Virus record (IMG/VR): IMGVR_UViG_3300042502_001233
Coordinates: 298,019 to 362,018 of that record
Length of the DNA: 64,000 nt
Reading direction: 5' to 3' (one strand)
Shown: positions 7,518 to 64,000 of the stretch, one piece after another
Position numbering within the stretch: position 1 is the first letter of the stretch
Layout of the letters: each line of letters opens with the position of its first letter
The notes under the pieces: model-generated
Databases searched by the model: none
What the model saw: only the letters and a program-made list of their open reading frames with translations
Told to the model about the DNA's origin: nothing
Position numbers and translations under genes: made by a program

Positions 7518-7574
7518 TTTACTTCTTTCTAAATAAATATCTAGAAATTATAAAAAGTACAAAAAAGTTTAAGG

Positions 7575-7648
7575 TGGAAGTAACGGGACTCGAACCCGTG
7601 TTCTCGCAACATCAGCCGCTTTATACTATCCTATTGTACTATACTCCC
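7575..7648 (-). ncRNA. tRNA-like RNA with Ala-type acceptor (G3:U70) and 4-nt anticodon loop
   Basis: GGGAGTA/TACTTCC-A acceptor, D and T arms intact; central hairpin GCGGC-TGAT-GTTGC. Confidence 0.6.
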
Positions 7649-54263: not shown

Positions 54264-55744
54264 TAATATGTAAATTTATGCCAAGTATCATAATTTTTAT
54301 CTAAAGCATCCATAGCCAGTTCAACTTCTTTTAAACATTCGTTGATACCACCACCAACTAGCACCACGTTGTTATAAGAACCCAAAAAGTCCATTAAGTC
54401 TGGAATATTAATACAATCCTCAGAATCTTCCATCAATTCTCTGATGTTTTTAGAACCGTATTGTTTAACAAATGCTTTCCAGAATTTTTTATCCAATTCT
54501 CTAGAATCGTTTATATCGTTATCTCGCATAAACTTAACCAGATTTACCAATTCTTCATCATCCCCACCACGGTCCATACAGTTTCTAAAGAACGCGTAAC
54601 CTTTGTCGTATAATCTAGCACCATAAGCTATATCTTCATCCAACCCGTTTTCTACCAACCAATCTCTATATTCATGTTCTGAAACCATACCCATAGTGTC
54701 TTCACCATTGTATAAAAACGTTAAATCAGATAATTCGTGTATATGCGTGTTGATGTATTCGAATAATTCAGTTTGTATACCACCCATCCATGAAGCGTAT
54801 TCTGGTTGAACGTCAACAACTATCAAATGTCTACCGACAGCATTTTCCGTTATCAAAGGCGTATCTTCATTGATTTCACCACTAGACAATTTTTTGTTGT
54901 GTTCAATAACTCTATCTAATATTTGATGATAAGCTTGAGATAACCTTCTCATAAGTCTTTTTTTGAAGTTTGGTGTCATTTTCTCATAGGCACCAAAGTT
55001 ATTCTCAAATTGAGTTTTAATACTACTAAAAGGAACTGGTGTTAAAAAACCATTAGGTTTGTTTTTATCCATTCCGTTGTTAGTAATATAGAACTGAATT
55101 TCTTTTATAGCTTGGGTAAACCTAGCGTTAATTTCGTATTCAAGTTTATCGTAGTCATCGCGTTGTTTTTGTGTGATAGGTGTACCTTTTGGTAAGTTAC
55201 CGTATTCTTTGTCGTAGTCATAACCTCTTTTGCTGGCCATGAACATACCTTGACTTCTCCAAGAGTCATAAGCATGTTGTAATTCGTGTAAAATTGTTGA
55301 TAGAACTTTTCTATCATACAAACGACCATGTACTTGGTTGCACATCTGGTTGTATATTTCTTGGTTGATTTGTTTACCTGATTTTAATATAGGGAAAACT
55401 ATATCTTCTATGGATTTTTGTAGTTTAGACAATTCATACCTAACAATGATATCACCACTAATTTCATTATGTGCGACAAAATCACCCAAAGAACTCAAAC
55501 TACCACTATATCTAAAACCTAAATCATATTCGTTGACAAAATCACTTAAATTTAAGTATTTGTTTCTGTTTATTTTGCTAAACATATCTTGAATTCTATC
55601 AAGGATATTTAATGTAGATTTTTTATCAATCGTTTCACTTACAAAATACCTAATACTAGTCATAAATACACTATCAGCCAAATTTTGCAATTCGACGTGT
55701 GTATTCATATCTTCTCTAAGTAGATGTTTGATTAACCTTTTCAT
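54263..55744 (-). CDS. two-domain protein: HExxH metallopeptidase-like plus cysteine-hydrolase (isochorismatase/nicotinamidase)-like
   Basis: ILHELQHAYD...EINAR; LIVVDVQ...DKGY...LVGGGINECL. Confidence 0.65.
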   Translation of the reverse strand: MKRLIKHLLREDMNTHVELQNLADSVFMTSIRYFVSETIDKKSTLNILDRIQDMFSKINRNKYLNLSDFVNEYDLGFRYSGSLSSLGDFVAHNEISGDIIVRYELSKLQKSIEDIVFPILKSGKQINQEIYNQMCNQVHGRLYDRKVLSTILHELQHAYDSWRSQGMFMASKRGYDYDKEYGNLPKGTPITQKQRDDYDKLEYEINARFTQAIKEIQFYITNNGMDKNKPNGFLTPVPFSSIKTQFENNFGAYEKMTPNFKKRLMRRLSQAYHQILDRVIEHNKKLSSGEINEDTPLITENAVGRHLIVVDVQPEYASWMGGIQTELFEYINTHIHELSDLTFLYNGEDTMGMVSEHEYRDWLVENGLDEDIAYGARLYDKGYAFFRNCMDRGGDDEELVNLVKFMRDNDINDSRELDKKFWKAFVKQYGSKNIRELMEDSEDCINIPDLMDFLGSYNNVVLVGGGINECLKEVELAMDALDKNYDTWHKFTY

Positions 55745-55750
55745 ATAAGT

Positions 55751-55864
55751 TTATGCGTTCTTTAATCTGTTGATGATTTCTTCGTTTTGTTTAACCAAAT
55801 TTCTTCTTTTAACCACATTACCTCTGTTAGGTTTAGCCGCTGGTCTTTTTGTTGCTCTCGCCAT
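55751..55864 (-). CDS. small basic protein (37 aa, MARATKRPAAK...)
   Basis: Read manually; directly behind a TATTTAT motif. Confidence 0.55.
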   Translation of the reverse strand: MARATKRPAAKPNRGNVVKRRNLVKQNEEIINRLKNA

Positions 55865-55931
55865 AATATTTAATTTTATTATAAATATCCAGTTAAAAAT
55901 AAAAAAACCTATACATTGTATAGGTTTTCAT

Positions 55932-56189
55932 AACAAAGTGAGCTTAGCCGCGATTCTGTTTTAATCCATAATTTATCTTTGCCACTACCCGTCTATCGTC
56001 ACAATCCAAGTTCCCTTGCTAAGACTGTATGTGTTGCATCCCGTGTTGCGGTAGTAGTAACGAATGTTCAGATGTTAACTAAAGTATTTAAACTTAGGTG
56101 CCAGCCATCTGCTGCTTACTAATTCTTCTACCTCTTGGAGAGATGTCGCGAACTTCCTCTGTTGCCAGCTATGGATTCTCTGCTTTGTT
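55932..56189 (-). ncRNA. rnpB: compact RNase P RNA
   Basis: CR-I GAGGAAGTTCGCGA pairs with CR-V ACAGAATCGCGGCTA (P4); CR-IV AGATAAAT; P1 ACAAAG/CTTTGT, P2 ATCCATA/TATGGAT, P3 CTG-GCAA-CAG; terminator hairpin near 55905-55928. Confidence 0.85.
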
Positions 56190-56192
56190 TTG

Positions 56193-56308
56193 TGGGGCGG
56201 CTGGAATTGCACCAACGTTTTTCAAATTTACAGTTTGGTTTTGTGAATTAAATTGCTGCAAACATTCTTCATAAACAGAATGTGTTGTTCTAACATTTTA
56301 ACACCCCC
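56193..56308 (-). ncRNA. degenerate tRNA-Tyr(GTA)-like RNA with inserted CAGCAA stem
   Basis: CAAA-CTGTAAA-TTTG anticodon arm; insert ACATTCT/AGAATGT-TTGCAGCAA between D region and anticodon arm. Confidence 0.55.
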
Positions 56309-56333
56309 ATATTAGTCACAAAAAAGTGACCAG

Positions 56334-56407
56334 TGCAGTAGACGAGACTCGAACTCGCAACCCTTGACTTGGCAAGCCAATACTCTAACCAATTGAGCTA
56401 CTACTGC
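56334..56407 (-). tRNA. tRNA-Gly(GCC)
   Basis: Full cloverleaf; TTGGC-TTGCCAA-GTCAA. Confidence 0.93.
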
Positions 56408-56546
56408 ATTTATGCCTCTCTCTGCATCCGTCACACCCCATTTGTATTCTGTTAATCTCCTAAGACTGTTTGCTACGCTTGACATAAAGTCTCAGCCCTT
56501 AAAAGGATTTTCCTAACGGTAAATCGGTGTCAAAAACCAGTATTTC

Positions 56547-57359
56547 TTAATACCACCACCATTTAGCTTGGTTTCTGTTTTGGTAATGAAACTCTTGGAA
56601 GTCTTGACTCCAAGCGCTAGCACTGGTCCAATCAGTCCAATCACTATCGGTGATAAACTCTCTTTCAGTCATTTCGTTACCTTGTTCTTTGTGCCACTCA
56701 TGAGAGTCGTTAATGAACATGGTGTTGAGGTTCTTTCTAAGAGCCATTTTGTCTTTGCGTCTGTTTCTTTTTGAGACACTTTTTAAGAACCAAGAATAAC
56801 CACCCTCATTGTAAGGATTCATAATAGTTCTAAGATGCCAAAGTTGGTCTCTTACAAATCTTAATTCTCGTTCTAACTCACCATCAACCACTTTACGGTG
56901 AGTGATGTAACTGTTTCTGATTTTCATAACAAAATAAAAATCTGGAACGTAAGACGCTGAGTAATATTTAGCTATAGTACCGTTCCAACGTGGTTTATCA
57001 TCTAAATGATTGTGTCGGAAATACTTTGCCACTTGTGGCGGCAATTTTAAATATTGTTCCTCAGACATTAATTTTATCTTAGGTTTTCTATCAATCACAT
57101 AACCTCTCTTTTTTTCGTAGAACACAGTCGTTGGAGACCATGTTAACGTAGAGCAATTATCAATGATGTATTGGAATACCCAAGCATCTTGTCTTCTAGA
57201 AATGTCTTCTCTTAATTCCAAATAAGCTTCATAGCCTTTGTGTATTGGTTTTTCAAGTTCAACATAACCTAAATTTTTGATGGCCATTTCAAGCTCATCT
57301 TCTTTTTCCATTAACGCTAAATAGCGTTTGTAATCTTTGTGTTTTGTGTTTTTACTCAT
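56547..57359 (-). CDS. hypothetical protein within tRNA cluster
   Basis: 270-aa ORF. Confidence 0.75.
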   Translation of the reverse strand: MSKNTKHKDYKRYLALMEKEDELEMAIKNLGYVELEKPIHKGYEAYLELREDISRRQDAWVFQYIIDNCSTLTWSPTTVFYEKKRGYVIDRKPKIKLMSEEQYLKLPPQVAKYFRHNHLDDKPRWNGTIAKYYSASYVPDFYFVMKIRNSYITHRKVVDGELERELRFVRDQLWHLRTIMNPYNEGGYSWFLKSVSKRNRRKDKMALRKNLNTMFINDSHEWHKEQGNEMTEREFITDSDWTDWTSASAWSQDFQEFHYQNRNQAKWWWY

Positions 57360-57488
57360 TTGTTCTCGGTATAGGGATTTGACCCTTAGTACCTCGAACC
57401 TTTTAAAATTGCAATCATAGTTTTCCTTTTTTATTAATTAGTATTTTATTAGAGTACAAATATACGAACTCTTTTTATAAATAGCAAG

Positions 57489-57758
57489 TTATTTGTTATA
57501 ATTTTTTAAATTATGTTCTACACACATAACCGCTTCTGCGATAGCCACTTTGGCATCTTCAACGTCTTTTGCCCAAGTAACCACACCCAAATTAGGTATC
57601 GTTACCTTGATGAAACCGTCTGGTCTTCTTTCAATGACGCTATTTCTGGTATCTTCTACCAACTTCTCAATTCTTTCTCTGTGCTTTCTAGAGCGTTCTG
57701 CTAACCTAGCTTTACTTTCCTCTGAAAGCTTTCCACCTAAGTATACAAAACTTTCCAT
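57489..57758 (-). CDS. hypothetical protein with HicB-like C-terminal segment
   Basis: VTIPNLGVVTWAKDVEDAKVAIAEAV. Confidence 0.55.
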   Translation of the reverse strand: MESFVYLGGKLSEESKARLAERSRKHRERIEKLVEDTRNSVIERRPDGFIKVTIPNLGVVTWAKDVEDAKVAIAEAVMCVEHNLKNYNK

Positions 57759-57773
57759 AATTAATATTTTTAG

Positions 57774-57853
57774 AGCCGATGGAGGGACTCGAACCCCCGA
57801 TGTTTGTATACCGCTTTACAAAAGCGGTGCTGTCGCCACTGAGCCACATCGGC
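57774..57853 (-). tRNA. tRNA-Thr(TGT), enlarged variable loop
   Basis: GCCGATG acceptor; CCGCT-TTTGTAA-AGCGG. Confidence 0.85.
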
Positions 57854-57956
57854 ATTTAATAGCTATCAAATCGTGGATATCATTGATTTGAAATAAACTT
57901 ATTATCCTTTCTGCAAGGAATGACAACCATCTCTGAAGTTTACTTATCACTATTTG

Positions 57957-58030
57957 AGCCTCAGACAGGAGTCGAACCTGCGACCTGCTGATTACAAATC
58001 AGCTGCTCTGGCCATCTGAGCTACTGAGGC
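57957..58030 (-). tRNA. tRNA-Thr(TGT)
   Basis: GCTGA-TTTGTAA-TCAGC. Confidence 0.95.
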
Positions 58031-58038
58031 ATATATTG

Positions 58039-58122
58039 TGGGCAAGGAGGGATTCGAACCCCCGAAGTCGAATGACAGATGTTTTACAGACACCGCGCTT
58101 TGAGCCGCTTGCATACTTACCC
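58039..58122 (-). tRNA. tRNA-Tyr(GTA)
   Basis: GGTGT-CTGTAAA-ACATC, long variable arm. Confidence 0.93.
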
Positions 58123-58186
58123 ATAACGGCCTATAACGTTTGCCACTCGATGGGTATTTCTTTCTCGCAGTACCATTTCTGCCGTG

Positions 58187-58265
58187 TGGGCCTAGAGGGA
58201 ATCGAACCTACAAGAATTAACACGATTTTACAGACCGCTGAGCTCACCACCTGCTCAATAGACCC
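58187..58265 (-). tRNA. tRNA-Tyr(GTA), imperfect T stem
   Basis: GCGGT-CTGTAAA-ATCGT. Confidence 0.75.
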
Positions 58266-58271
58266 AATTTC

Positions 58272-58330
58272 AGGGTGGTGTATCGGTTTCAAATTAAAAG
58301 TTTGATGATAAAGATTGCTGAAACCACCCT
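58272..58330 (-). ncRNA. mini RNA: CAGCAA stem carrying an isolated Lys(TTT) anticodon stem-loop
   Basis: AGGGTGG-TTTCAGCAA...TCAAA-CTTTTAA-TTTGA...CCACCCT. Confidence 0.6.
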
Positions 58331-58334
58331 TTAG

Positions 58335-58406
58335 TTGGAATGTAGGGACTCGAACCCTAAAAATGACGGTCAAAGTGTCATATGTTGCCAATTACATCAC
58401 ATTCCA
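58335..58406 (-). tRNA. tRNA-Gln(TTG)
   Basis: TGGAATG acceptor; loop CTTTGAC. Confidence 0.85.
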
Positions 58407-58417
58407 GTATAATATTG

Positions 58418-58488
58418 TTGTCCTACAAGGATTCGAACCTTGAATGACTGGCTCAAAACCAGTAGTGTTACCGTTACACTATAGGACA
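58418..58488 (-). tRNA. tRNA-Gln(TTG)
   Basis: ACTGG-TTTTGAG-CCAGT. Confidence 0.92.
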
Positions 58489-58661
58489 ATAACTCTAATT
58501 CTATGCTCGTCCTCACGCAACTCTATAAATTAGTAACAGTCTTATCTACAACGTCAGTAGGACTTAAAAGGAACCACTCATTTATATCCTTTCTATCAAC
58601 GGGGAATCACTCCCATGCTTGGCGTAATCCATACATCACTGCATGTCTATCCTACTTATTG

Positions 58662-58735
58662 AGCGATTATTCGGATTCGAACCGAAACCAGAGACTTGGA
58701 AGGCCCCTGTGCTAGCCGTTAAACACCATAATCGC
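58662..58735 (-). tRNA. tRNA-Gly(TCC)
   Basis: GGGGC-CTTCCAA-GTCTC. Confidence 0.92.
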
Positions 58736-58786
58736 AATTTTCTAATTTATTTATTTCATCTAAAACATAGTTTATATATTATTTTG

Positions 58787-58859
58787 TGCTCCCGAAGGGC
58801 CTCGAACCCTTTACCCCTCCGTTAAAAGCGGAGTGCCCGTCCACATGAGCTTCGAAAGC
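58787..58859 (-). tRNA. tRNA-Lys(TTT)
   Basis: CTCCG-CTTTTAA-CGGAG. Confidence 0.85.
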
Positions 58860-58883
58860 AATTATCCATTTCTGGATTTTTAG

Positions 58884-58957
58884 TACCCCCGAAGAGACTC
58901 GAACTCTTGACTCCCCGCTTAAAAGGCGGGTGCTCTAACCAACTGAGCTACGAGGGT
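58884..58957 (-). tRNA. tRNA-Lys(TTT)
   Basis: CCCGC-CTTTTAA-GCGGG. Confidence 0.95.
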
Positions 58958-59045
58958 ATATTACACTCATAACCAATTGGTCTGAGTGACTTAACGTTTA
59001 CGCTTTATGTTCTTTATATTTTTCATTTGTTTTATTGTTGTTTTT

Positions 59046-59121
59046 GGCCTCCCAGAAGGATTCGAACCTTCCATCCATAAGCCCCCAATGGGCTGCGCTT
59101 TTCCTACTAAGCTATGGGACG
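59046..59121 (-). tRNA. atypical tRNA/pseudo-tRNA, anticodon ambiguous (TGG or TTG)
   Basis: D and T arms intact; AGCCC-ATTGG-GGGCT anticodon arm is non-canonical. Confidence 0.5.
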
Positions 59122-59127
59122 CATATT

Positions 59128-59475
59128 TTATTTTTGTCTTTCTTTTAATTCTTCAACCGTTAAATTATAACGATGTAATATTCTATGATGATTCGCACAA
59201 AGGCAAACACATTTTTCAATTTCATTTATAATTTTAACATTAGACCATTTATGGTTACATACAGCGGCTATTGTAAATTCTTTATCATCTTTGTCTATGT
59301 GATGAAAATCTATACAAGCTTTATCCGCTTCCCCACAAACTAAACAAGGTTTTTTTAAGGTTTCTACTAAATCTCTAATTTCTTGTCTTCTTTGTCTTTG
59401 TTTTAAATTATGAATTTCTTTATTGTTTTTAAATTCATTTTGTTTCCATTCTTTTTGTTTTTCTGTCTGTGCCAT
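59128..59475 (-). CDS. small HNH endonuclease
   Basis: CLVCG...DFHH...KCVCLCANHHR. Confidence 0.88.
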   Translation of the reverse strand: MAQTEKQKEWKQNEFKNNKEIHNLKQRQRRQEIRDLVETLKKPCLVCGEADKACIDFHHIDKDDKEFTIAAVCNHKWSNVKIINEIEKCVCLCANHHRILHRYNLTVEELKERQK

Positions 59476-59598
59476 ATTTTCTTTTTATTATAAATATGTT
59501 CAAGTCATACAAAAAGACTAGAATTTATCAAATTATTAGCCATTATTTTCATAATGTTTCCAGTAACCGCTGCGTGGAAGCTATTTGATATGGTTACT

Positions 59599-59687
59599 TC
59601 TAAGTGATGGGACTCGAACCCACATGATGCTTTTTACACAATTCTCGTTTCCAAAACGAGTCGGCTTCCAATTGCCTTCACACCTAG
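59599..59687 (-). tRNA. tRNA-Pro(TGG) with long variable arm
   Basis: CTAGGTG/CACTTAG acceptor; CTCGT-TTTGGAA-ACGAG; T arm GTGGG-TTCGAGT-CCCAT. Confidence 0.7.
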
Positions 59688-59701
59688 TTATTTTGTTGCA
59701 T

Positions 59702-59737
59702 AAAAAAACCCAGTTTAGATTGCTCTGAACTGGGTCT
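59702..59737 (-). terminator. intrinsic terminator (candidate attenuator) in front of the tRNA cluster
   Basis: ACCCAGTTCAGA-GCAA-TCTAAACTGGGT followed by a T run. Confidence 0.9.
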
Positions 59738-59760
59738 ATAATCTGTACTTACGTACTTTA

Positions 59761-59862
59761 TTATATTGTTGTCAAATCTAACAACTTGACATACCCAGTC
59801 ACCTTGAACGGTTTCCCGCCTTTAGGTTGATATTGCGTTTGATATGTGGTTGTTGTTGTCAT
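59761..59862 (-). CDS. candidate attenuator leader peptide MTTTTTYQTQYQPKGGKPFKVTGYVKLLDLTTI
   Basis: Read manually; A-rich initiation region; lies between promoter and terminator; codons 2-18 only Thr/Tyr/Gln/Pro/Lys/Gly. Confidence 0.8.
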   Translation of the reverse strand: MTTTTTYQTQYQPKGGKPFKVTGYVKLLDLTTI

Positions 59863-59926
59863 TGTTTTTTATTTAATTTGTTTGTTTGTTTTCTTGTGGA
59901 TTTCTCCGTTGATTAATAAATATGTG

Positions 59927-59958
59927 CAAATATACGAAAAGATATTATACTAGTCAAG
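59927..59958 (-). promoter_or_regulatory. Bacteroidota-type promoter of the tRNA operon
   Basis: TATATTTG (-7 box, 59927-59934) with CTTGAC about 20 bp upstream. Confidence 0.7.
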
Positions 59959-59992
59959 TTTTTTTGCAACTTTTTTTAAATTATTTTCTAAC

Positions 59993-60496
59993 TTATTGAT
60001 TTTCAGAGCTTTCGTCTCTACGTTTTATTTCGTCTCTTAGAGTTGCCGCTAGTTCATAGTCTTCTTTTGTCACAGCTTCTTCTAATAATTCTTCTAATGG
60101 TCTGCTTACTTTTGGTTTATTAAACAATTCATTAATCCTATCCGAACGTTTAGTATTTTTTATTTTATCAAGTTCTTCTTTGAAAAACTTTGGTTCATCG
60201 TGTTCATCTCTAAATGGAACATCAGACATTACTTTTTTAACTACTCTACCCATTTTGGTAATCCAAATTTGTTTTTTGTAGAAGAAACCATCTTCTTCAT
60301 AATAATCCACAAAATCTGGTTCACCAAGAGTGTTATCAATATTTTTGATAGACTCAATATCTGGGTTGTTAGATTTTGATTGTGATAAAATGTTCAATAA
60401 TCTAGTCATTTTATCAGCATCGCTATTTTTTTTAGGTTTTTCATTAGAACCTTCTTCAAAAAACTCGTTGAATAGGTCATTAAATTTGTTACTCAT
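59993..60496 (-). CDS. hypothetical protein with C-terminal UVR (UvrB/C) motif
   Basis: LEELLEEAVTKEDYELAATLRDEIK. Confidence 0.78.
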   Translation of the reverse strand: MSNKFNDLFNEFFEEGSNEKPKKNSDADKMTRLLNILSQSKSNNPDIESIKNIDNTLGEPDFVDYYEEDGFFYKKQIWITKMGRVVKKVMSDVPFRDEHDEPKFFKEELDKIKNTKRSDRINELFNKPKVSRPLEELLEEAVTKEDYELAATLRDEIKRRDESSENQ

Positions 60497-60497
60497 A

Positions 60498-60932
60498 TTA
60501 CTTTAATTTTTTTGCTATTTTATGTTTTGTTTTTTTGGTATGGTGTATAATTAATCTAATAAATGGTATATCAGAGAAATAAACATACATACCAAAAAAT
60601 GTTGTCGCTAACCCGTACATAATACACATGGTAAACCAATAGTCATTAGTTATTTGTAATACCCCATATACTATCCAATCGTATCCTAACGGGTTAAAAA
60701 ATAACCCTAACGTTACCAAAAGATTTCCTAACCCTATTTTACCGTTTTTAAAGAAAAAGTAAGACAAAGATAACAATAGGAACGCCAACCCATATAGAAC
60801 GTACATTGTACTCCAATAGTCGTTGGTTAATTGTGTCAGCTTGAACACCAAAATATCGAACCCAAACGGGTTTAGAAAAGTGCCGATGGCTAAACAAACT
60901 GTCGCTATCTTCTTCCTTGTTATCTGAATCAC
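60498..60932 (-). CDS. membrane protein with internal duplication
   Basis: GTFLNPFGFD..LTNDYW / GLFFNPLGYD..ITNDYW. Confidence 0.75.
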   Translation of the reverse strand: MIQITRKKIATVCLAIGTFLNPFGFDILVFKLTQLTNDYWSTMYVLYGLAFLLLSLSYFFFKNGKIGLGNLLVTLGLFFNPLGYDWIVYGVLQITNDYWFTMCIMYGLATTFFGMYVYFSDIPFIRLIIHHTKKTKHKIAKKLK

Positions 60933-61380
60933 TATTTCCCATATTTAAAATTAATAAACATTATTTATTAATAAATATCATTAAAAATTTATTATTTTAC
61001 ACAAATATACTGATTTCAGTATATTTGTCAAGTTATTAAACAACACCATTTAGGTGTTATCATATTTTTAAATACGAAAATAGGTGTTTTCGTGTTTATC
61101 CTTGTCTAGTGTTTTCCAAAAACCTATTTTGTATAAGAATACATGATAGAGAAAATAAAATAGTAAAACCGACAATTCTCTATCTAATGTGGACAAAAAG
61201 TCAAATATTTTTTCTAACATTACCATTATTTATTAAAATCAATTACTATACCATTTCGATTATTTTTTTGGGCTACTGGTTTATTCTCAGAACTTTCATC
61301 ACTGACAATAAATAAATCTTTTAATCCCATTTTGTTATAAAGTTTTTAATGTTGGTACAAAGGTATGAATAAAATTTCAA

Positions 61381-61872
61381 TTATGCAAATTTTTCTGGTA
61401 TTTTTTCTATGTGTCTTGTTAAAATAATGTAAGAACACCATGCAAGGTCTATTGTTTGCTCAAAGAACCCTTCATCAATTCTGTAGTGTGACCTATCACA
61501 ATCCCACAACGCATCTTTTATACCTTGAGTAAATTGTTTCATGTTGGTAGGTACAACTCTAGGTACTGGCACTTTGATAGTTTCTGGAAGATACTTCTCT
61601 TCTAATTTATGGTACCATTTACGGTTTTCATAAAAAATCTTAGTTCTAGCTTCTTCTTTAGCTACTCTATCTGGGTCTTTACTACTTATATATAAAGGAC
61701 CATATTTACTATTTAATTCATTCCACTCAGCTGTTTCTTCTGGTGAAACATCAATTATAGTTCTAGTCAACAACATATCAGTACTCAACGTTGGTAAATG
61801 ACATGCAACTATGTATTCACCGACATACATGCCTAACTGATAATTCAAAGGAAGTCTTTTTCTTTTTCTCAT
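61381..61872 (-). CDS. hypothetical protein
   Basis: Start chosen at MRKRKRL behind a TACCTTTG box. Confidence 0.65.
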   Translation of the reverse strand: MRKRKRLPLNYQLGMYVGEYIVACHLPTLSTDMLLTRTIIDVSPEETAEWNELNSKYGPLYISSKDPDRVAKEEARTKIFYENRKWYHKLEEKYLPETIKVPVPRVVPTNMKQFTQGIKDALWDCDRSHYRIDEGFFEQTIDLAWCSYIILTRHIEKIPEKFA

Positions 61873-62214
61873 ATGACAAAGGTACAAATAAAAAATGACA
61901 CTACCAAATGATAATGCCATTTTTTTTGAAGGAAGCACTGCTTTACGGTAAATTACCAACCTAATTTTTGGGTCGACTGGAGTTAACAATCGGACTGTCC
62001 ACCAGCTTATTTTTTATAAAACAAGCAAAAACCTAGAAGAACAGTGACTCAAGGGAATACTCATACCTCGGCTCTAGAAACCTTTCATTTAGTTTCGCCC
62101 CCTGTATAGATAGTTTATACTCTATCAGATACCCGTGGTCAGCCACAGCTCTTTTTCTACATATCCCAATTGTGGGAAAGGGAGCCACCTCTAAACTACT
62201 TGAGTTTGTTCTCG

Positions 62215-62400
62215 TATGGTGAGTAGGATTCGAACCTACTAGGTAAGGGTTCCTTCATTGGCTGTTAAGCACCTTCATGAGGCTCAGTTTCGCCACCCTC
62301 TGCACAAACCACGACTTACTTTCCCATTTACCTTAACTGATGTTGAGACGTGCGTTCGTTTACCTTATTGTCTTTTAGCGTTCCCAGACGCATTCACCAT
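62215..62400 (-). ncRNA. expanded tRNA-like RNA (about 185 nt)
   Basis: ATGGTGA/TCACCAT closing stem next to T arm GTAGG-TTCGAAT-CCTAC. Confidence 0.45.
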
Positions 62401-62411
62401 ATGTGAGTGAC

Positions 62412-62538
62412 AAGATTGCGTTTTAATAGTGCTACCCATTACACCACACGCCCAACACCTCTATTAGGACATGCTGGGACTCGAACCCAGACCTTCTCGA
62501 TTTCAAAGCGAATTGTACAAATTTGCTGAAACAATCTT
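62412..62538 (-). ncRNA. circularly permuted tRNA-like RNA with CAGCAA stem (Y-RNA-like)
   Basis: AAGATTG-TTTCAGCAA, anticodon arm, T arm, CATGTCC-loop-GGGCGTG, D arm, CAATCTT. Confidence 0.75.
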
Positions 62539-62731
62539 TTTTCACTCTATTAAGGCTAGAGGAACCTTTTATTTTTGGCTTTCACCATAATGTCATGATA
62601 ATGTTGGAAAACCCATCCTTCTTCCAATCCTTGGTGCTTCTTAAGTTTTACGTAGCCACGGCACGGGTGTTACACTGCGAGTCCGCTGTTGAAATTGTCG
62701 ACATCTCAACAGTAAGTGTCATTATCATTAG

Positions 62732-62846
62732 TACAAGAGATTGGATTCGAACCAATGCCACTCCCACGTCTCGCATCCAATCTAAAAGGGAATCGAACCC
62801 TACGCACGGTTACAGGGGGAGTGCTCTTCCGCTAAGCTACTCTTAT
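62732..62846 (-). ncRNA. tRNA-like RNA with about 45-nt insert, including a second T arm, in the anticodon loop
   Basis: ATAAGAG/CTCTTGT acceptor, D arm, ACTCCC/GGGAGT stem, insert AGGG-TTCGATT-CCCT. Confidence 0.6.
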
Positions 62847-62998
62847 ATTTGAGGCTGAGGCCTCTGTGTTGTAGTGACTACAAAGTCTATCCACTCTTCT
62901 ACCTACATCTCTACTACCACTCCGATATAGGGTGGGATGGTTCGGTCTCCTTATTTAGCATTCCTTTCTCAAGGGAACAACACAATATTTTAGACAAC

Positions 62999-63126
62999 AA
63001 GATTACTTTTTTTCTTTTACGTGCTCTAACCAACTGAGCTACCGACCCACTAGGAGCCGAGTGGGACTCGAACCCACGACCACGAGCTTAACAGGCTATA
63101 GATAGTTTTGTTGCTGAAATAATCTT
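62999..63126 (-). ncRNA. circularly permuted tRNA-Asn(GTT)-like RNA with CAGCAA stem (Y-RNA-like)
   Basis: AAGATTA-TTTCAGCAA, AGC-CTGTTAA-GCT, T arm, TCGGCTC-CTAGT-GGGTCGG, GCTC-AGTTGGTTA-GAGC, TAATCTT. Confidence 0.8.
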
Positions 63127-63216
63127 TCTATGTCTAGTAATAACTCACGCAATTTCTCACGTGAATTATCGACCCCTTTTGTTATACTCTTGAGGGCACT
63201 CTGAGTTAGTTGGTGA

Positions 63217-63849
63217 TTACTTTCCTTGACCAGAAACGTTAATCGAACCTACAGAACCAGCTTTAGCTCTTTCGATACCAGCTGCTCTTTCAGCATCCAA
63301 CTGTAAGTACAATTTCGTAACTTGTTCTTCTAAGAACTTGTTTTGTGTCGCTAATGTACCAATTTTTGCTGCATTTTCCGCTGCGATAGCTTTGTTTTCT
63401 GAGTGAATCAACTTGATTTCGTTCTCGTATTGAGATTTCAATGTTGATGCAACAGTAGCAACTTCACGTTTTACTTGAGCCTCAGTGTTAGTTCTAGCTT
63501 CTTCTAAGTCACTTTTCAATGCGCTTAACTCGCTAGCAGAAACTGCTACTTTGTTTACGCTTGATAAGTACTCGTTAACTACACGGTCAGTGTTAGCTTT
63601 GAAGCTTAAGTCTAAATCAACTTTTAATTGACGTTCTTTTTCAGTGAACTCTACTTCCAAAGCTTTGATAGCTTCTTCTTTGTTCGCTACAAGTAACGTT
63701 AATTCTTCTGCTTTAGAAGTTAATTGATTTACACTTGCAGTTGCGTTGTTTAACTCAGCTACTGCTTTCGTGATTTGTTGTGCGGCTTGTCCTAAGACGA
63801 TTTCAGTGCTCACACTTGCTTTCTTTGCGGTTGTTGTTTTTCCAGCCAT
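63217..63849 (-). CDS. coiled-coil hypothetical protein
   Basis: 210 aa, Ala/Glu/Lys-rich heptad pattern. Confidence 0.8.
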   Translation of the reverse strand: MAGKTTTAKKASVSTEIVLGQAAQQITKAVAELNNATASVNQLTSKAEELTLLVANKEEAIKALEVEFTEKERQLKVDLDLSFKANTDRVVNEYLSSVNKVAVSASELSALKSDLEEARTNTEAQVKREVATVASTLKSQYENEIKLIHSENKAIAAENAAKIGTLATQNKFLEEQVTKLYLQLDAERAAGIERAKAGSVGSINVSGQGK

Positions 63850-64000
63850 TTGATTGTTTTTGTTTGTTTGTTATGTTATGTTATGATAATTAATCCATTT
63901 TTATAATACAAAGATACTAACTTTTAAGTCAAAAGTCAAGTAAAAATTCGTATTTTTAACAACTTTTTTTGCTGTATAAACAACTGATTGTCAATAAGTT

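Follow-up and report, generated by a model that had tools for sequence, protein, structure and literature searches.

The window analyzed here is a stretch of 64,000 nucleotides from a phage known only from metagenomes (IMG/VR record IMGVR_UViG_3300042502_001233, positions 298,019 to 362,018), and the unit of interest lies on its minus strand. It begins with a Bacteroidota-type promoter (59957-59927), composed of a -33 element TTGACT (59957-59952) and a -7 element TATATTTG (59934-59927). The motif TTG-N19-21-TAnnTTTG occurs 20 times on the coding strand against 1.8 in shuffles. A 5'-UTR hairpin, H0 (GGA-GAAA-UCC, 59907-59898), is followed by a leader ORF of 33 codons (59862-59761), which ends in UAA with a second UAA directly after it. 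The start context of this ORF is A-rich, with A at -3 and no Shine-Dalgarno sequence, like that of the long ORFs of the phage. An intrinsic terminator (59737-59702) comes next, with an 8-bp outer stem, a 3-bp inner AGA/UCU stem, a GCAA loop and a U7 tail (59708-59702), at -16.2 kcal/mol. The first tRNA gene lies only 14 nt after the U tract, which leaves no room for a promoter. All of the elements listed in the original prediction, which proposed a tRNA-depletion-sensing attenuator at this place, are present.

Interestingly, codons 2-18 of the leader (59859-59809) encode only Thr, Tyr, Gln, Pro, Lys, and Gly, the six amino acids served by the tRNA genes downstream. This run of 17 residues is unique, and the next-longest run in all six frames of the window is 8. 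Because these residues make up 31% of the long ORFs of the phage, the chance of such a run (p^17) is about 2e-9. The original prediction described the codons as mostly cognate to the downstream tRNAs. However, the Thr codons ACC and ACT are not strictly cognate to a UGU anticodon.

The first gene of the downstream unit was called by ARAGORN as tRNA-Pro(UGG) (59687-59599). It is atypical, being 89 nt long with a long variable region and scoring 28.4 bits against the Rfam threshold of 29, although its homologs in relatives score up to 52 bits. In this genome the array is not contiguous. The first tRNA is followed by a candidate HDV-like (theta-type) self-cleaving ribozyme (59598-59527) and by a 115-aa ORF with HNH-like Cys/His motifs (59475-59128), which had no Pfam hit and is apparently an insertion into the array. 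Relatives have HNH-annotated ORFs at other places in their arrays. ARAGORN finds three Gln(UUG) genes rather than the two listed in the original prediction. One of them (59121-59046) is a non-canonical tRNA-like element with A33, whose homologs in relatives are called Gln, His, Ala, or undetermined depending on single-base differences. The apparent extra tRNAs (His, Ala, and a third Gln) are thus one homologous element. A compact array of Lys, Lys, Gly(UCC), Gln, Gln, Tyr, Tyr, Thr, and Thr tRNAs follows (58957-57773). No consensus promoter was found between 59927 and 57457, where the -7 box of the next one ends, and none lies inside the compact arrays, so that these must be read through the terminator. 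On the other hand, tRNA-Gly(GCC) (56407-56333), which the original prediction included in the set of tRNAs downstream, lies beyond that next promoter.

Conservation of the leader and its linkage to tRNA genes

Relatives were found in three independent ways, through the neighboring UVR-motif protein, through the core of the ORF, and through the terminator alone. About 60 related phage contigs carry the leader ORF, the terminator and the antiterminator segment described below, directly upstream of an array whose bona fide tRNAs serve only Lys, Pro, Gly, Gln, Tyr, and Thr. The promoter is conserved at the same place in all relatives, and the leader stays recognizable where the flanking protein is only 28-40% identical. 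A search of a GenBank phage collection for distant matches to the leader found nothing, and a search for near matches with 20 kb found only tRNA-sized matches, indicating no cultured relative. The exact back-translated leader pattern was found in viral contigs only in the source contig. A scan of genome contigs gave one false hit, in a Legionellaceae genome assembled from a metagenome and without leader features, so that the element was not seen in the bacterial genomes scanned. Pfam searches with the 33-aa peptide and the neighboring ORFs detected only a UVR motif in the upstream 167-aa protein.

The ORF is open in every relative and all indels within it are multiples of three, although translation itself is inferred. 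Substitutions and 3-nt indels in the sensing stretch mostly stay within the six amino acids. By our reading of the alignments, about 11 of 16 inferred substitution or insertion events do so (p of about 3e-4 to 2e-3), and one relative, L103 (L numbers designate the other leader-bearing sequences), has a 20-residue run of the set. Occasional residues outside the set (Met2, Ala5, Val5, Asn4, and Ser18) occur in some relatives without a matching tRNA. The residues encoded in the C-terminal part of the leader vary freely, whereas the RNA hairpins formed there co-vary.

Intriguingly, other leader types go with other tRNA sets. In L086, Pro, Gln, or Asp occupies 9 of 13 residues in one stretch, ahead of Pro, Asp, Gln(UUG), and Gln(CUG) tRNAs, and L059 has a similar Asp/Pro-rich leader ahead of Asp, Pro, Gln, and Gln. 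A second leader in one phage (L141:1147-1343) carries FF and EED runs ahead of Phe, Glu, and Asp, with its own regions 1-4, although the leaders of L059 and L141 also hold many residues with no matching tRNA.

Alternative pairings predicted in the leader RNA

The segment GACTGGGT at 59800-59793, just after the sensing codons, is complementary to ACCCAGTT at 59735-59728 in the 5' arm of the terminator. The first of these, region 2 (GACUGGGU), is a near copy of the 3' arm of the terminator (region 4, 59715-59708), and the second, region 3 (ACCCAGUU), is a shared strand that can pair with either region 2 or region 4. The 7-mer ACTGGGT occurs about 4.6 times per 128 kb in shuffles, and a same-strand copy within 100 nt of the terminator is therefore expected about 0.4% of the time. 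Region 2 is invariant, including at synonymous sites and a rare GGG codon, and it is conserved although the ORF frame over it shifts in L083, L084, L115, and L079. About 35 unrelated terminators with the same stem had no tRNA downstream, and only one of them had an upstream copy of region 2.

Several further hairpins are predicted. At the position of H0, relatives keep a hairpin with different stems (GGAU/AUCC, GGGG/CCC, GGGU/ACCC, and A6/U6). The GAAA-capped hairpin H1 (GGCGG-GAAA-CCGUU, 59820-59807, -5.3 kcal/mol) covers the Gly-Gly-Lys-Pro codons, and relatives keep a hairpin here in a shifted register (GGCG/CGCC versus GGCC/GGCC; 72% paired in the register of the window). Hairpin H_C (59791-59770, -7.8 kcal/mol) lies in the 3' part of the ORF, with 91% of alignment cells paired and 2 pairs changed on both sides, and its stem is rebuilt as UCAAG/CUUGA, UCAUG/CAUGA, and UAAGU/ACUUA in relatives. 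Hairpin H2 (59765-59737) contains the stop codon in its lower stem and has a GNRA loop on its upper stem (GUAC-GUAA-GUAC). Compensatory changes are found in both stems (GUAC/GUAC, AUAC/GUAU, GUAG/CUAC, and GAUA/UAUC).

The terminator is in the full-length minimum-energy fold in 25 of 25 leaders and is 100% paired in 29 leaders. In truncated RNA, the 8-bp region 2:3 helix is predicted by minimum energy in 14 of 17 leaders. L106 and L115 showed no clear 2:3 pairing in the minimum-energy fold. With the RNA cut before region 4, the probability of 2:3 pairing is 0.75-0.98 for a ribosome on codons 6-18, with all 25 leaders at 0.75 or more, and 0 for a ribosome on codon 22. Masking a ribosome footprint gives 0.85-0.93 for A-site codons 1-18 and 0 for codons 20-28. 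The boundary of permissive stall sites in these simulations is therefore at codon 18, where the six-amino-acid stretch ends.

Diverged lineages show matching changes in the two strands. L057 and L116 have GACUGGGC with GCCCAGUU, a U-A to C-G change. L109 changes region 3 (U to C), region 4 compensates, and the region 2 G then forms G-C in place of G.U. L103 has a different terminator and a matching new region 2, and in L059 and L086 region 2 is GACUAACUG (GGCUAACUU in L086), complementary to region 3 CAGUUAGUC. In the lineage of the window itself, however, the core of the 2:3 helix is invariant, so that co-variation there is uninformative and shuffle controls for this helix alone are not significant. 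In L033, L083, and L084, a change in region 3 is compensated in region 4 but not in region 2.

A possible gauge of decoding capacity

These results suggest a ribosome-mediated (leader-peptide) transcription attenuator that gates read-through from one promoter into the tRNA array, a reading to which we assign a probability of about 0.7 on computational evidence alone. In this model, slow decoding of any of the codons 2-18 stalls the ribosome within this stretch, region 2 stays free, H_C and H2 fold between, and region 2 pairs with region 3 in a three-way junction, so that the terminator cannot form and RNA polymerase runs on into the tRNA genes. If decoding is fast, the ribosome runs over region 2 to the stop codon, region 3 is left to pair with region 4, and transcription ends at the U tract. 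The result would be negative feedback, in which supply of the six tRNAs is raised when decoding capacity for their codons falls. That stalling switches the structure in vivo, and the direction and size of the effect, are inferred. The terminating state depends on kinetics that sequence analysis cannot show. The stop codon lies 30 nt downstream of region 2, and a ribosome there does not cover that region. The equilibrium probability of 2:3 pairing with a ribosome at the stop ranges from 0.01 to 0.99, and untranslated RNA favors the antiterminator at equilibrium. Termination must therefore rest on timing, ribosome bulk, or refolding of region 1 (the sensing codons) with region 2, a pairing that is weak in this lineage, and transcription-translation coupling does not appear to have been characterized in Bacteroidota. 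A pyrBI-type mechanism, in which the ribosome physically covers the terminator, was rejected because the stop codon is 26 nt upstream of the terminator stem.

The nature of the natural signal is a separate matter. The original prediction was that the switch senses host tRNA destruction by anticodon nucleases, which is not supported by these data, only not excluded, since any slowing of decoding would act in the same way. It is about as likely as not that the same anatomy reports amino-acid starvation, tRNA charging, decay of host tRNAs during infection, or the general rate of translation, and tunes tRNA supply to demand. Classical attenuators sense charging, the modeled default without ribosomes is read-through, so that a global loss of translation would also switch the unit on, and no defense or anti-defense gene was identified next to the unit in this window. 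Nothing found here speaks against this view, but phage tRNAs can rescue infection from tRNA-cleaving defenses (PMC10264068; PMC11555353; PMC12409363), which, together with the duplication of each tRNA with divergent sequences, keeps the counter-defense reading open. More speculatively, a whole group of aquatic Bacteroidota phages, many with very large genomes, may carry modular attenuators, each written in the codons of the array it controls (Lys/Pro/Gly/Gln/Tyr/Thr, Asp/Pro/Gln, or Phe/Glu/Asp), and switch on the matching replacement tRNAs when those of the host are cleaved by tRNA-targeting immunity or decay. Such a sensor-coupled counter-defense, in place of constitutive tRNA supply, is possible but unlikely on present evidence.

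It is improbable that the ORF is a stand-alone small gene for a functional peptide, with a constitutive, somewhat leaky terminator (also ending the upstream operon) and tRNAs expressed by basal read-through. The ORF is conserved with a good start context, its central motif YQ(T)(K)QYQPKGG is nearly invariant, and the terminator is strong. However, this view does not explain why the composition of the peptide equals the tRNA set, why other leader types match other arrays, or why region 2 is conserved at synonymous sites and across a frame shift, and the C-terminal third varies freely while keeping RNA hairpins. In addition, the ORF was not called in the public records examined, and Pfam finds nothing in it. 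An RNA-only element governed by a bound protein, uncharged tRNA, or small molecule, with an incidental ORF, is similarly unlikely: H0, H_C, and H2 co-vary, nucleotide conservation exceeds what coding requires and the alternative pairing exists without reference to the ORF, but the ORF is kept open in every lineage, its composition persists despite nucleotide changes, the boundary of permissive ribosome positions coincides with the end of the restricted stretch, and no Rfam family matches the leader (59926-59702) above noise, a weak CrcZ hit over its CA-rich start (12.7 bits, E 0.34) included.

Why phages carry tRNAs is a long-running question, usually answered by codon compensation, replacement of decaying host tRNAs, or escape from tRNA-cleaving defenses. 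If the model holds, the phage measures decoding capacity for exactly the codons served by its tRNAs and adjusts tRNA output to it, and the leader itself states which shortages matter. It would be, to our knowledge, the first leader-peptide attenuator that controls tRNA genes and the one with the largest number of inputs, as well as a compact natural part for sensing translation stress in Bacteroidota. The existence of several codon-matched versions suggests a general design rule.

Comparison with known systems

HDV-like (theta) ribozymes next to phage tRNAs have been described, and most predicted hosts of such phages are Bacteroidota (PMC10879173). The candidate found here starts at the base after the discriminator of the first tRNA (59598), which fits the proposed role in cutting the tRNA 3' trailer, and all 74 model positions are aligned. 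Its score for RF02682 is 32.3 bits, below the threshold of 44 (E 3e-4 in the local search), and it was absent from six relatives and present only in this genome among those scanned. It sits next to a Pro(UGG)-type tRNA and an HNH ORF rather than a suppressor tRNA, and it is not part of the attenuator. Phage-encoded tRNAs as a counter to tRNA-targeting defense or to loss of host tRNAs (PMC10264068; PMC11555353; PMC12409363) resemble the present array, in which tRNAs occur in pairs with the same anticodon, including those for Lys and Tyr, for which cleaving defense systems are described. Those reports concern the tRNAs themselves, and our full-text searches found no description of a codon-matched leader and attenuator controlling them.

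In pheST (pheM leader) attenuation and in T-box leaders of aminoacyl-tRNA synthetase genes, the supply of a component of the translation apparatus is set, as proposed for the phage unit, by sensing the state of the matching tRNA through a terminator/antiterminator switch. However, pheM senses one amino acid and controls a synthetase, and T-box RNAs bind uncharged tRNA directly and need no ORF. No T-box match was found in 59450-59960 or 55000-64000 at E up to 1. The multivalent leader-peptide attenuators of enterobacterial amino-acid operons (the thr leader sensing Thr and Ile, the ilvGMEDA and ilvBN leaders sensing Leu/Val/Ile, and also trp, his, leu, and pheA) have no sequence homology to the present leader, but they share with it a promoter-proximal short ORF enriched in regulatory codons for more than one amino acid, an intrinsic terminator before the regulated genes, and a segment that can pair either upstream or downstream, with ribosome position, as inferred for the phage unit, deciding the outcome. 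In the phage unit the regulated genes would be tRNAs and not biosynthetic enzymes, there would be six inputs, the stop codon lies downstream of region 2 inside one of two scaffold hairpins between regions 2 and 3, region 1:2 pairing is weak in this lineage, and the setting is a Bacteroidota phage with no Shine-Dalgarno sequence.

Organization of the leader and its tRNA array

The 362-kb viral contig IMGVR_UViG_3300042502_001233, of which the window is the last 64 kb, has no cultured phage relative in GenBank, but three features point to a Bacteroidota host. The promoter motif TTG-N19-21-TAnnTTTG occurs 20 times on the coding strand, against 1.8 in shuffles, only 1 of 46 long ORFs has a Shine-Dalgarno-like sequence, and start codons sit in an A-rich context, with A at -3 in 78% of the long ORFs. 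This promoter type and start context appear to be characteristic of Bacteroidota. Read on the minus strand, the region holds in order a promoter (59957-59927), a small 5' hairpin, a 33-codon ORF (59862-59761), two hairpins (H_C and H2), the second of which contains the stop codon, and a strong terminator (59737-59702), followed 14 nt later by a tRNA-Pro(UGG) called by ARAGORN. Codons 2-18 encode only Thr, Tyr, Gln, Pro, Lys, and Gly. These six residues make up 31% of the phage's proteins, and the 17-residue run is unique, since the next-longest in any frame of the window is 8. GACTGGGT (59800-59793, region 2) is complementary to the 5' arm of the terminator (region 3), and a same-strand copy of its 7-mer core that close to the terminator is expected about 0.4% of the time.

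The downstream tRNAs are Lys x2, Gly(UCC), Gln x2, Tyr x2, and Thr x2, plus the first Pro. tRNA-Gly(GCC), which the original prediction had counted within the matching set, lies further on, past another promoter. The consensus promoter occurs once before the leader and not again until after the compact array, in the window and in relatives, and the 14-nt gap leaves no room for another promoter. The array therefore depends on reading through this terminator. In the array (57773-58957, minus strand) and in the arrays of relatives, most tRNAs come as two divergent genes with the same anticodon. Some have odd lengths (Pro 89-96 nt, Thr 81, Gln 83), the Pro tRNAs have A, not G, at position 37, and no CCA is encoded. 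Intriguingly, an HDV-like (theta-type) ribozyme candidate (59527-59598, minus strand) starts one base after the first tRNA and is followed by an HNH-like ORF (59475-59128). It scores 32.3 bits against a threshold of 44, and the six relatives scanned lack it, so it looks like part of an insertion into the array.

Other tRNA-like or structured RNA signals were seen outside the array. A 1.2-kb G+C-rich non-coding stretch (61990-63216, minus strand) holds several tRNA-like modules, of which two are weak YrlA-like (Y RNA-like) Rfam hits, at 41 and 21 bits against a threshold of 69, and one is called as a tRNA-Thr with a 44-nt intron (62731-62846). A weak match to archaeal RNase P RNA (55932-56189, minus strand; 22.6 bits against a threshold of 84, E 0.0024) just downstream of tRNA-Gly(GCC) is probably noise, although it lies in a non-coding stretch. 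Far from the array, ARAGORN reports a tRNA with an undetermined two-base anticodon (7573-7648, minus strand).

Conservation of the leader in related phages

Homologs of the upstream UVR-motif protein, at 40-96% identity, led to syntenic contigs, and more loci came from pattern scans on the ORF core and on the terminator alone, and from a scan with a protein alignment. In total, about 60 loci from lake, marine, and other aquatic metagenomes were obtained. In all of them the leader lies directly before a tRNA array, whose bona fide members serve only Lys, Pro, Gly, Gln, Tyr, and Thr, sometimes with one copy each (the related loci L033 and L044) and often with two. The sporadic "His," "Ala," "???," and third "Gln" calls are one homologous tRNA-like element with an abnormal anticodon loop. 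This conserved element (59046-59121 in the window, minus strand) has A33 and a variable "anticodon," and its homologs occupy the second array position in the relatives L006, L009, L012, L013, L016, L018, L030, L031, L035, and L039. ARAGORN assigns it differently depending on single-base differences. The leader remains recognizable where the flanking protein has fallen to 28-40% identity. Upstream of the UVR-motif gene, the relatives L003, L005, and L008-L013 carry an OmpA-domain protein and ABC-transporter genes (permease, ATPase, NMT1-type binding domain), which are unusual cargo for a phage.

The ORF is open in every lineage, and all indels are 3 nt. In the sensing stretch, substitutions and an inserted codon mostly stay within the six amino acids; by our reading of the alignments, this applies to about 11 of 16 inferred events (p of about 3e-4 to 2e-3). 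The exceptions are Met2, Ala5, Val5, Asn4, and Ser18, whereas the relative L103 has a 20-residue run of the set. The C-terminal residues vary freely, while the RNA hairpins they encode are kept by compensatory changes. This pattern fits a leader peptide rather than a functional protein. In the relatives L034, L041, L042, and L044, the 5' hairpin contains an AUG in frame with the leader that would extend the ORF by 8-11 codons, although this may be incidental.

Predicted alternative pairings and co-variation

In 25 distinct leaders, the full-length minimum-energy fold contains the terminator. When the RNA is cut just before the 3' arm of the terminator (region 4), region 3 is predicted to pair with region 2, and the resulting 8-bp helix closes a three-way junction over hairpins H_C and H2. 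A ribosome footprint was masked at each codon in five representative leaders. The antiterminator probability is 0.85-0.93 for A-site codons 1-18 and falls to 0 for codons 20-28, and the same holds at sampled codons in all 25 leaders. The boundary falls where the six-amino-acid stretch ends. In several lineages a stalled ribosome raises the probability above the ribosome-free value, because it removes a competing pairing of region 2 with the sensing codons (region 1). On the other hand, the stop codon lies downstream of region 2, so the terminating state cannot be explained by simple masking, and equilibrium folding with a ribosome at the stop gives anything from 0.01 to 0.99. Termination must therefore rest on timing, on the ribosome unfolding H_C and H2, or on refolding of region 1 with region 2.

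In the window's own lineage, regions 2, 3, and 4 are almost invariant, so counts there say little. Region 2 is nonetheless fixed at synonymous sites, including a rare GGG codon, and it is also kept in the relatives L083, L084, L115, and L079, although the reading frame over it is shifted. This points to constraint at the RNA level. Diverged lineages add real changes. L057 and L116 turn the outer U-A pair of the 2:3 helix into C-G. In L109, region 3 is changed and region 4 compensates, and region 2 then forms a Watson-Crick pair in place of a wobble pair. L103 has a different terminator with a matching new region 2. However, L106 and L115 gave no clear pairing. As a control, about 35 unrelated terminators that share the same stem had no tRNAs downstream, and only one had an upstream copy of region 2.

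Leaders of other codon content and relation to known attenuators

Interestingly, further leader/terminator units of different sequence lie ahead of different tRNA arrays. The locus L059 has an Asp/Pro-rich stretch ahead of Asp, Pro, Gln, Gln, with region 2 GACUAACUG complementary to region 3 CAGUUAGUC. In the leader of L086, 9 of 13 residues in one stretch are Pro, Gln, or Asp, the array that follows is Pro, Asp, Gln(UUG), Gln(CUG), and region 2 GGCUAACUU forms 8 pairs with the same region 3. The leader at L141:1147-1343 carries FF and EED runs ahead of Phe, Glu, Asp, then an odd tRNA-like call and Pro. It has almost the same promoter and 5' hairpin as the window's type, but four regions of unrelated sequence with the same 1:2, 2:3, 3:4 logic. 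L141 also carries the window's leader type 3 kb downstream, so one phage has both. Leader codon content thus follows tRNA content, in line with the co-variation anticipated in the original prediction, although these leaders are less pure than the window's. These observations suggest a family of codon-matched attenuators.

Full-text searches found no description of such a leader on tRNA genes. As to the natural signal, tRNA cleavage by host defense is one candidate among several. On computational evidence alone, the element is a well-supported candidate for a multivalent leader-peptide attenuator of a phage tRNA array, widespread in one group of aquatic Bacteroidota phages. Leader-peptide attenuation is itself a known kind of regulation, and one difference here is that the genes placed behind the leader are tRNA genes.
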